The position numbers were made by a program, and so were the translations under genes. 64,000 nt of DNA from Iphione sp. A-MEVVRFRX5 (taxonomy: Eukaryota), in assembly GCA_976226885.1 (NCBI GenBank), contig OZ320315.1, forward strand, positions 32,736,001 through 32,800,000. The letters run 5' to 3'. This document shows, piece by piece, positions 50,646-57,159 of this stretch (the stretch's first letter is position 1; each line of letters starts with the position of its first letter). The notes below the pieces were generated by a model. That model searched no databases and was not told where the DNA came from. It worked only from the letters and a program-made list of their open reading frames with translations.

Positions 50646-51227
50646 ATCACGACGAGTAACAATACCTACATACTCCATCTGGTAGAAAGGACGACCAGAA
50701 GAAGGACGGGTTGCCCAGAAATTATACATCCAACCCACCCACCCACCCCCGAAAGTAATGAAAATACAATCGCCTTCTTTGGCAAAAATCACCCACTGTC
50801 GAACAACCACATAAGACCGTTTGAGTTCGAAGGAGTAATCTATCAATCAGTAGATCAGGCAGTTGGCGCAGCTATCGCCCTACGTCAGGGAAACCATTCC
50901 TTTTTCAGAGATCTACTTCAAACCCATGACCCACTGCTAATCATGCGTAAAGTAAAACCAATAATCAATGGGTTCGGTACTGAACAGGTGAATGCTTTAG
51001 TGTCCTCAATTGTCCTGGCCAAGTTCAGCCAGGTGAATGAACTGAAACAAAAGCTGTTAATGACAGGTGAGAAAACCATTATCGAGGCCTCCCTTGACCA
51101 AACCTGGGGTGCGGGTACAACTCTACGTAGCCTTGACCTATCACGTGCAACTTACAAGGGTCAGAATCAGTTAGGCAAAATCCTGATGTCAACGCGTTCT
51201 AGACTCAGACAGCCGCTGCCGGTGTAG
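50646..51227 (+). CDS. NADAR (YbiA/DUF1768-like) domain protein. The open frame extends about 100 codons upstream of the Met used by the ORF track (50943); the start codon is uncertain
   Basis: Manual translation from 50769: IAFFGKNHPLSNNHIRPFEFEGVIYQSVDQAVGAAIALRQG...DPLLIMRKVK...IVLAKFSQVNELKQKLLMTGEKTIIEASLDQTWGAG...YKGQNQLGKILMSTRSRL. This matches the NADAR pattern FF..LSN..PF..G..Y.S / AKFSQ..L...LL.TG...IEAS..D..WG.G / G.N.LG..LM..R. Confidence 0.85.
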   Translation: MTTSNNTYILHLVERTTRRRTGCPEIIHPTHPPTPESNENTIAFFGKNHPLSNNHIRPFEFEGVIYQSVDQAVGAAIALRQGNHSFFRDLLQTHDPLLIMRKVKPIINGFGTEQVNALVSSIVLAKFSQVNELKQKLLMTGEKTIIEASLDQTWGAGTTLRSLDLSRATYKGQNQLGKILMSTRSRLRQPLPV

Positions 51228-51242
51228 TAGATAGCATCGAGA

Positions 51243-55160: not shown

Positions 55161-57159
55161 ATAGTCTACCTGTTATTATAATAAGCATTGTTATCTGCAC
55201 TTTATATTATCATCATTTGTAGTATGCAGTAAAAACATCCATCCCTCATTATTGTATATATGTACATAATTACTACTATTAAGAATGTGTATTCTCATTG
55301 TACATAGTAATCAATGATTTGAACTATTGTAGCAGAAAACGCTGACACCATTGGATTGTCAGGATAAATAAAATTTAAAAAAAAAAAAAACTCCCCATAT
55401 CCAAGCGTGTTTTTTTCTGAAGTAATTTTTTTTATCTCTATCAACTTTGAAGGTGGCAGAAAGTATTGCTGCCTATACAATATATGCCACCTCTGTGTAC
55501 CATTACCACCACAGGAGTCTGTACAGCGTCGGAGATTGCAAAAGCAAGGGTGAGAAGATAGCATGCTGATTTACCGATCGCTCGTCCCAAGATAACCACG
55601 CCCACTGCGAAACGTCATGGCATGTACTTCCGGCATAGACATTGTGCTGCATCCCAAGGGACTTTTCAATGTTAAAATACCCATTTTTGACTGCTTATAA
55701 CTTAGATTCTGTTGGATGGGAAAAATACCAAAATTGCTATGGGTCACTGTTAATATACCCTCTTTATGTATACAAAAGCTAATGATTCTATCTGTAATAT
55801 TAACAGAGAACATCAACCCTCTCATCGAGTCTAATGCTAGACAGCTATGTTTGTCTATGCTGAAGGTTCCCACACTTTCTAAGGGATGCCCTCTGATTGG
55901 CTAGACTGAGCTGTCACTCACAAAAAGCGATCCGTCAATTAGCGTTTCTCTGCCTCTTCTCACTTTTAGCAAGCTCCCCCACGGGGAAACTTAAACAGCA
56001 ATCTGTTAAGGTTCTTAAGGCTCTTTCATTTTCATAAAATCAAAGGGGGCCGAGTATTGTTCAAAACTACAGAACTCTGAACTGACTGCTGATGATTTCT
56101 TATAAATGTGTCTTGAATATGATTCGTGCCATACAGACAGTTAAAATGTCTGCTTCATGCGTACACAGAGGAAAGGGTTATTCTAAAAGCGACTCTTATC
56201 CAGACATGTACATATGTTAGGTACAATATGAACAACGCACTGCCAACCAGGAATGTTCAAGAAATTCCACATTTATCTAACCTCACAGATTTGGATGTGT
56301 TTGCTCTGTGTTTTTCACATCTGCAAGTACTGAAAGACGAGGTGTGGTTATATGTGAGGACTTCTGGAAACCAACCGCACATTTCATTATGATTTCTGTA
56401 AGTTTTCGCGAACTTTTCAGGACTTTCAATAAATAAACTTGTTGGTTTTTGTCAGGATTAATCTGAATTTTCACAAATTTCCTTATGATTCTCGCGGAAC
56501 TTCTCAACTTCCTCCATGTGCAAGAGCTTTTAACAATACCGTGAGCATTTGATTGTGATTTTCGCACTTTTAGCGGAAATCGTGTAGATTGTAATTCTCT
56601 TCCTTTATCACACTTCTCACAATATAAAAGATAAAATAGATCTTTGCATGTCTTTCCTCACAGAAAGCTCCACGGTCTGCAATAAGGTGGGGGGAAAAAC
56701 AAATCAAGTTAAAAGCCTAATCCCTTTGGAGGGGAAACATTTTAGATCGCAATATAAGAAAAACGCGTGCGGAAATCCACACGGAAATTCAACCAGATCC
56801 TACCGAGAAAATCAATTACAGCCCGCAGGCAACTTCGGAAAAGCAATTGTTGAATTCGCCCGAAAGCCATTTTCATGGGCGACATTGGTTGTTTCGAGCG
56901 CTGTTAAAACTACATGATCTTGCGAATTTAGCATGCAAACCTCGCCAGCATGGGCAATGAGCCCCGAGGGGGGATCGGTTACAGCTTAAACATCTAATCT
57001 ACCACTACTTTCTCTTGTTTACCCCCCCCCCCCCCCACGCGCGAGAAGATCAATATCCGAGCCCAAATAATGTCGTTCGCCGTGTAAATTGCATCCCCAC
57101 ATCGACACCCCCCGGTATTGACCTTGTAAAACTACACCTATTCACAGAAAGGACAATGG

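Follow-up and report, generated by a model that had tools for sequence, protein, structure and literature searches.

A LINE family of Iphione sp. with three ORFs, a poly(A) tail and a NADAR domain in its ORF1 protein, and a clade of that family with substituted active-site residues

The 64,000-nucleotide stretch analysed here (positions 32,736,001 to 32,800,000 of the forward strand of contig OZ320315.1, Iphione sp. A-MEVVRFRX5; hereafter termed the window, to which positions given without a contig or locus name refer) contains, at 50751-55390 on the plus strand, a long interspersed nuclear element (LINE). Taken as a whole, this element is probably best explained as a recently inserted, 5'-truncated and non-autonomous copy of a poly(A)-tailed LINE family with three open reading frames (ORFs): ORF1, whose protein product (ORF1p) ends in a YbiA-like NADAR domain, a free-standing ORF for an SGNH-fold esterase-like protein, and ORF2, which encodes an apurinic-type endonuclease (APE) and a reverse transcriptase (RT). 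The NADAR domain is an old, integral and selected part of ORF1p in this family. Most clades keep the three residues implicated in catalysis, whereas the clade to which the window copy belongs has replaced two of them while its NADAR domain is under strong purifying selection.

The anatomy of the element and of the family is as good as certain. The plus-strand frame 50646-51227 holds 193 open codons, the first ATG lying at 50943; however, its first part (50646-50750), with which a previous sequence-only reading of this DNA had begun the element, is unrelated flank that is open in the NADAR frame by chance and has no repeat match in the genome, and the similarity to relatives begins at about 50751. 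The complete NADAR domain (50751-51227) forms the 3' end of a 5'-truncated ORF1, and its frame is closed by a TAG codon at 51225-51227 and a second one at 51228-51230. The separate esterase-like ORF of 225 amino acids (51243-51920) starts 15 nt past the first of these stops and is followed by a 408-nt spacer (51921-52328) in which every frame is stopped and of which the first ~85 nt can be aligned to relatives at 70-75% identity. ORF2 (52329-55160) is intact and codes for 943 amino acids with Pfam matches to Exo_endo_phos and RVT_1 (RVT_1 E 3.5e-37), the APE extending over approximately residues 1-230 and the RT over residues 513-755. In the 3' untranslated region (UTR; 55161-55376), AATAAA is present at 55367-55372 and the last ~70 nt are kept among diverged relatives; the 14 uninterrupted A residues that follow (55377-55390) mark the end of the insertion, relatives having A9-20 and then unrelated flanks. 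The NADAR frame, the SGNH ORF 15 nt downstream and the intact ORF2 are thus all found where the sequence-only reading had placed them. The family shows the features of a LINE, namely APE and RT in one ORF, a 3' poly(A) tail, many dispersed copies and variable 5' truncation.

The identity of the NADAR domain, which had been proposed from the translated frame, is confirmed by profile and structure comparisons. The Pfam profile NADAR (PF08719) is matched with an E value of 2.3e-19 and 70.7 bits (gathering score 35.1) over model positions 12-163 of 163, and a NADAR profile of the family matches 8BAU, the NADAR protein of P. nicotianae (Phytophthora, an oomycete) with bound ADP-ribose, with an E value of 2.1e-15. 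An AlphaFold2 model of the domain, based on an alignment of 28 genomic copies, reached a pLDDT of 90.5. When it was compared with solved structures by Foldseek, 8BAU (TM 0.83) and E. coli YbiA (2B3W, TM 0.69) were retrieved with a probability of 1.0 each, and no fold other than NADAR matched the model.

Evidence that NADAR belongs to the LINE comes from its copies in the same genome. A six-frame search of the 1.18-Gb assembly with the window NADAR piece as query gave 3,366 first-look candidates, of which 150 were scored (all with E<=4e-17); nearly all of these are free of stop codons, and most constitute the C-terminal end of open frames of 590-720 amino acids. Thirty loci around the best NADAR matches in this genome were taken as a linkage sample, and in all 29 loci other than the window itself NADAR, esterase-like ORF and ORF2 follow one another in the same order on one strand, so that the linkage 5' of the esterase proposed for the window copy extends to the others. 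The gap between NADAR and the esterase-like ORF measures 12-60 nt at these loci and the N-terminus of ORF2 lies about 0.4-0.5 kb further on; their esterase-like ORFs share 35-65% amino acid identity with that of the window, and esterase and ORF2 overall 35-69%. The linked loci span clades whose NADAR domains are just 38-45% identical, which makes the fusion an old one. The suggested capture by this element, if taken as a recent event, is contradicted by these clades and also by 28-34% identical elements in other public assemblies that combine ORF1-NADAR with an RT.

In full-length copies, ORF1p consists of a low-complexity or disordered N-terminus, a coiled coil, which is indicated by many weak Pfam coiled-coil matches, a conserved region of ~150 amino acids and the C-terminal NADAR domain. 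The three best PDB matches of a profile of the ~150-residue region are human and mouse L1 ORF1p (2YKO, 2YKP and 2LDY; E 0.0014-0.024, with alignment across the RNA recognition motif, RRM). These were its only specific PDB matches, the similarity is marginal, and the Pfam family Transposase_22 had no match in ORF1 of the family. The family may share with the mammalian L1 proteins the succession of coiled coil and RRM, but differs from them by the additional C-terminal NADAR domain, and in the window copy coiled coil and RRM are missing. The two copies most similar to the window copy in ORF2, L047 (G000:C17:76123670-76126736) and L048 (G000:C13:94634594-94637422, minus strand), have intact ORF2s of 943 amino acids; their similarity to the window copy begins no more than ~10 nt from the ATG of ORF2, and within 5 kb upstream (loci L108 and L109) neither ORF1 nor NADAR nor esterase was found. 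They are most simply regarded as 5'-truncated copies and not as evidence against linkage; that two independent copies both start at ORF2 could be due to a preferred site of truncation or to the retrocopying of a shorter RNA.

The window copy itself is dead on arrival. When seven full-length ORF1 proteins were used as tblastn queries, no more than their final ~160 residues had matches in the window, starting at 50745-50760, and nothing similar to the coiled coil or the RRM was present anywhere in the 64 kb; a DNA alignment with relatives places the breakpoint at ~50751. The copy lacks the ~450-residue coiled-coil/L1-type RRM part of ORF1, the 5' UTR, the promoter and the start codon of the NADAR-bearing frame. 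Since there is no promoter, no N-terminus of ORF1 and no ATG before 50943, a complete NADAR protein is not expected to be formed from this locus. The designation of the LINE as young can be upheld in part, on indirect grounds: 1,326 codons (3,978 coding nt) are free of stops, which limits neutral decay to less than ~1.7% at the 95% level, and the stop-free ORFs together with the pure A14 tail make a recent insertion likely. However, no sibling in the same assembly exceeds 75% nucleotide identity, so that youth cannot be read from the divergence of copies. Two members of the window clade, L018 and L019, differ in their flanks and hardly at all within the element, which indicates recent activity.

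The 225-residue ORF is clearly predicted to adopt an SGNH fold with a catalytic triad, in agreement with the sequence-only reading, although its match to Pfam GDSL_2 is weak (E 0.046, 14.7 bits) and below the cut-off of 32.9 bits. Its AlphaFold2 model (pLDDT 88.1) gave 96 PDB matches at E<=1e-3, all of them SGNH/GDSL hydrolases, with TM values of 0.56-0.61. Block I (DSHG) with Ser14 (51282-51284) and block V (DGCH) with Asp200 (51840-51842) and His203 (51849-51851) are invariant in 27 copies, whereas the block III Asn of the oxyanion hole is replaced in the window by Cys66 (51438-51440; AGTCD), relatives having N or T. The NADAR and esterase frames of the window are identical and are separated by TAG TAG and four codons (51225-51245). 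A conserved readthrough from ORF1 into the esterase was considered and rejected, as the two frames differ among relatives and the spacer varies from 12 to 60 nt; because of these differing frames, reinitiation is the likelier mode of esterase translation. ZfL2-1-type (type IV) LINEs reportedly encode ORF1 proteins with an SGNH esterase and would thus resemble the family described here in coding for an SGNH-fold esterase ahead of ORF2; there, however, the esterase is a domain of ORF1p, whereas here it forms a free-standing second ORF beside an L1-type, NADAR-bearing ORF1p.

Relatives of the family were found beyond this genome as well. When 1.84 billion representative sequences were searched with a profile, 44 proteins were obtained at E<=1e-30, many of which carry NADAR at the C-terminus of a 400-600-residue protein. 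A Logan contig (L056) contains an ORF1-NADAR of 592 amino acids, an ORF of 228 amino acids with the canonical SGNH blocks GDS, GGIND and DGLH, and then the start of an ORF2. A scaffold from ENA (L107; ERZ23498364, 348-6185) encodes an ORF1-NADAR of 409 and an APE-RT protein of 1,020 amino acids, the latter 27% identical to the window ORF2 over 902 residues; in the 1.5-kb gap between the two there is no esterase ORF, and the esterase is therefore a variable add-on among NADAR-LINEs. In a word-indexed protein search, ORF1 region 300-622 had no match, a profile of 16 ORF1 sequences had just two, and all matches of ORF2 were <=33% identical.

A further ENA contig (L105; ERZ25069580) was left out as a LINE relative, since it holds a cluster of multi-NADAR genes and no LINE: at 1581-6379 three adjacent genes (152, 803 and 635 amino acids) each contain NADAR domains. 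Another protein, P0121 (4,240 amino acids), has seven NADAR stretches. As these examples illustrate, multi-NADAR proteins exist apart from LINEs.

For the catalytic centre of NADAR proteins, the study of Schuller et al. (2023, PMC11543638) describes E43, K50 and E125 of the P. nicotianae protein (E88, K95 and D171 in E. coli C7 NADAR) as mechanistically relevant. K95 (corresponding to K50) is essential for efficient hydrolysis and can be replaced partly by Arg alone, an E88A exchange in E. coli C7 NADAR has only a minor effect in vitro, and D130 and W133 touch the pyrophosphate (PMC11543638). These residues were mapped onto the genomic copies through the alignment of the family profile to 8BAU. 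In the window copy, the position of E43 is occupied by Asp (50853-50855) and that of K50 by Ile (50874-50876), and E125 is retained as Glu (51084-51086), along with the equivalents of D130 and W133; the stretch that holds these last three residues reads IIEASLDQTWGAG. All 11 members of the window clade have D or N at the first position and I or L at the second, and E (8), D (2) or N (1) at the third. They also have Gly at +4, where most others carry a second Lys, no Lys at +4 or +7, and have lost the Trp aligned near W89. Among 57 other copies of this genome, Glu is found at the E43 position in 53, Lys or Arg at the K50 position in 39 and Glu at the E125 position in 52, the full E-K/R-E set being present in 37 (65%); four relatives from outside the genome all have the complete set (E 4/4, K/R 4/4, E 4/4). 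A FastTree phylogeny built from 72 NADAR domains shows the window clade as a nested, monophyletic group (support 1.0), and its active-site state is therefore derived. The ancestral state, which is also that of most clades, is the retained E43/K50/E125 triad.

The NADAR domain of the window clade is under strong purifying selection. Within the clade, pS is 0.51-0.85, that is, synonymous sites are saturated, and pN is 0.06-0.29; for the pair L017 and L018, dS is 0.86 and dN 0.061, which corresponds to an ω of about 0.07, so that the dN/dS check suggested by the sequence-only reading gave a value not near 1. The esterase (pN 0.08-0.24) and ORF2 (pN 0.13-0.32) show a matching constraint.

Because E43 and K50, residues supported by mutagenesis, are replaced by D/N and I/L, respectively, a working eraser in the window subclade is doubtful, and on balance we lean towards a loss of the canonical hydrolysis of guanine-linked ADP-ribose in this clade. 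According to an alternative which we consider unlikely, the domain would still be an active hydrolase in which Asp stands in for Glu43 and phosphate is bound by other residues, possibly with a shift of substrate to cytidine-linked ADP-ribose or another N-glycoside. The retained equivalents of E125, D130 and W133, a NADAR pN as low as that of ORF2, the minor in-vitro effect of E88A (PMC11543638) and the widening range of NADAR substrates reported in PMC12945103 are in line with residual activity. However, the essential role of K95 and the merely partial replacement by Arg (PMC11543638) are difficult to reconcile with a clade that has Ile or Leu at the K50 position, Gly at +4, no conserved basic residue nearby and no counterpart of W89.

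With respect to function, all NADAR proteins tested so far take ADP-ribose off guanine, both in DNA and in RNA, whereas ADP-ribose at phosphate ends is a substrate for none of them (PMC11125620, PMC11833690). ORF1p would coat the RNA of the element, and because of this coating many C-terminal NADAR domains would be concentrated on the ribonucleoprotein particle (RNP), beside the RNA and the nascent cDNA. The ancestral role would most likely have been to free the element's own nucleic acid of base-linked ADP-ribose or of a similar N-glycosidic adduct; in clades with an intact triad NADAR may plausibly strip base-linked ADP-ribose from element RNA or cDNA, whereas in the window branch, where the canonical reaction would most likely have been lost, the domain would probably be retained because it serves in structure or binding or acts on an altered substrate. 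For the family as a whole, the putative eraser role stands somewhat short of an even chance. Its most far-reaching version, which we consider quite unlikely, is that LINE NADAR domains serve as a counter-defence that strips host-installed ADP-ribose from guanines of LINE RNA or first-strand cDNA, that the domain of the D/I subclade has turned into a non-catalytic binder of ADP-ribose or nucleic acid, or a decoy, that is still selected, and that, together with the esterase, this LINE lineage carries two accessory enzymes.

Several points weigh against the account given here. PF03496 (ADPrib_exo_Tox), used as a proxy for a guanine-specific host writer of the pierisin/CARP-1 type, had no match in the same genome, a result that is uninformative since the controls were equally silent. 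No target-site duplication of the window copy was found, only chance matches of 6-7 nt, and the bounds of the insertion are not fixed in this way. The assignment of the RRM in ORF1 is a marginal profile match, and the loss of activity in the window clade is deduced from motifs, as Asp might partly stand in for Glu and another basic residue for K50.

Quite unlikely, too, is the view that the LINE NADAR domain has no connection to ADP-ribosylated nucleic acids in any clade and either processes RNA ends or NAD metabolites or is purely an oligomerisation or RNP-assembly module. It draws on an RNA-processing hypothesis first proposed for viral NADAR proteins and cited in PMC12477816, on the fact that the PF03496 search with its silent controls identified no host writer enzyme, and on the tolerance of an entire clade for the loss of E43 and K50; most clades and 4/4 of the outside relatives, however, keep the exact triad for the hydrolysis of guanine-linked ADP-ribose. 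That NADAR is a chance neighbour of the LINE, a host exon or a one-off transduction in the window copy is practically negligible, for although the window NADAR piece has neither a start codon nor an N-terminal ORF1 part and the ORF2 relatives L047 and L048 have no NADAR upstream, this notion is refuted by the uniform order and strand at 29/29 loci, by the position of NADAR at the C-terminus of ORF1s of 590-720 amino acids and by the recurrence of the layout in other assemblies.

The placement of the family among LINE clades is less clear-cut. A C-terminal CCHC motif in ORF2 is a defining trait of the L1/Tx1 group. It is absent from 11/11 ORF2s of the family (941-953 amino acids), and the RT profile of the family, compared with PDB structures, is no closer to the core of L1 (5.8e-21) than to R2 (1.9e-20); membership in L1/Tx1 is, as judged from these two traits, not supported. 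The APE does match the L1 endonuclease (1e-10). A CR1/L2 grouping, with which the sequence-only reading had worked, is not established either: the esterase, the size of ORF2 and the conserved terminal ~70 nt at the 3' end are compatible with it, but a poly(A) tail in place of a microsatellite, an L1-like ORF1 and an APE that matches the L1 endonuclease are atypical. The ~70 nt that precede the poly(A) in the window copy (55320-55390) and in L047-L055 have the end ...TTGGATTGCCAGGATAAATAAAATTTG and show 85-92% conservation, whereas the coding regions are just 64-71% identical, which suggests that this terminal segment may be recognised by the RT.

A NADAR domain in a LINE ORF1 has been mentioned before. 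A study of transposable elements in Ectocarpus (PMC12477816, Genome Biol 2025) reports NADAR from one Gypsy lineage and remarks in passing that the ORF1 proteins which Repbase lists for several Tx1 LINEs of Crassostrea gigas appear to contain a NADAR domain of the YbiA family; in the literature on NADAR, DUF1768 or YbiA in ORF1 of non-LTR (long terminal repeat) retrotransposons, no mention was found beyond this one paragraph. The suggestion that the architecture had not been characterised has to be qualified in this respect. To our knowledge, the combination of ORF1-NADAR, free-standing esterase and APE-RT, the copy numbers and the clade with a degenerate site were previously undescribed. The C. 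gigas elements resemble the window family in having NADAR in the ORF1 protein of an invertebrate non-LTR retrotransposon, but PMC12477816 gives no separate esterase ORF, copy numbers or active-site analysis for them, and the window family has an ORF2 of ~945 amino acids without CCHC motif and an RT no closer to L1 than to R2, so that its membership in Tx1 is not supported.

Stand-alone and antitoxin NADAR proteins (8BAU, 2B3W and those associated with DarT1) have the same fold and the YbiA-type Glu in the last strand, and most LINE clades keep the E43/K50/E125 set; they differ from the LINE domain, which is fused to a retrotransposon RNA-binding protein, has no toxin partner and, in the window clade, carries the exchanges of E43 to D/N and of K50 to I/L. 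The viral macrodomains of coronaviruses, alphaviruses and hepatitis E virus (HEV) offer a conceptual analogy alone, that of an ADP-ribose hydrolase on a selfish element; their fold is unrelated, and they act mainly on protein- or phosphate-linked ADP-ribose, whereas NADAR proteins act on the base-linked form.

If LINE NADAR domains do erase base-linked ADP-ribose, ADP-ribosylation of nucleic acids would be implicated as an anti-retrotransposon defence of animals, and NADAR-LINEs would be to retrotransposons what macrodomains are to viruses and NADARs to phages. In this regard the family amounts to a natural experiment: it numbers thousands of copies, and beside clades whose triad is intact there is one whose triad is substituted and which selection still maintains. 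The window locus is an ordinary truncated, non-autonomous copy, and its value lies in being a further member of the family and an example of the degenerate-site clade.

Two other repeats were noted in the window. A 140-bp tandem repeat (4.8 copies, 85% match, also with a 281-bp period) occupies 57160-57833, ~1.8 kb downstream of the LINE, and a long (GGA)n-type repeat of ~240 units with a higher-order period of 257 bp (44736-45475) lies inside a minus-strand ORF of 328 amino acids (44505-45491).

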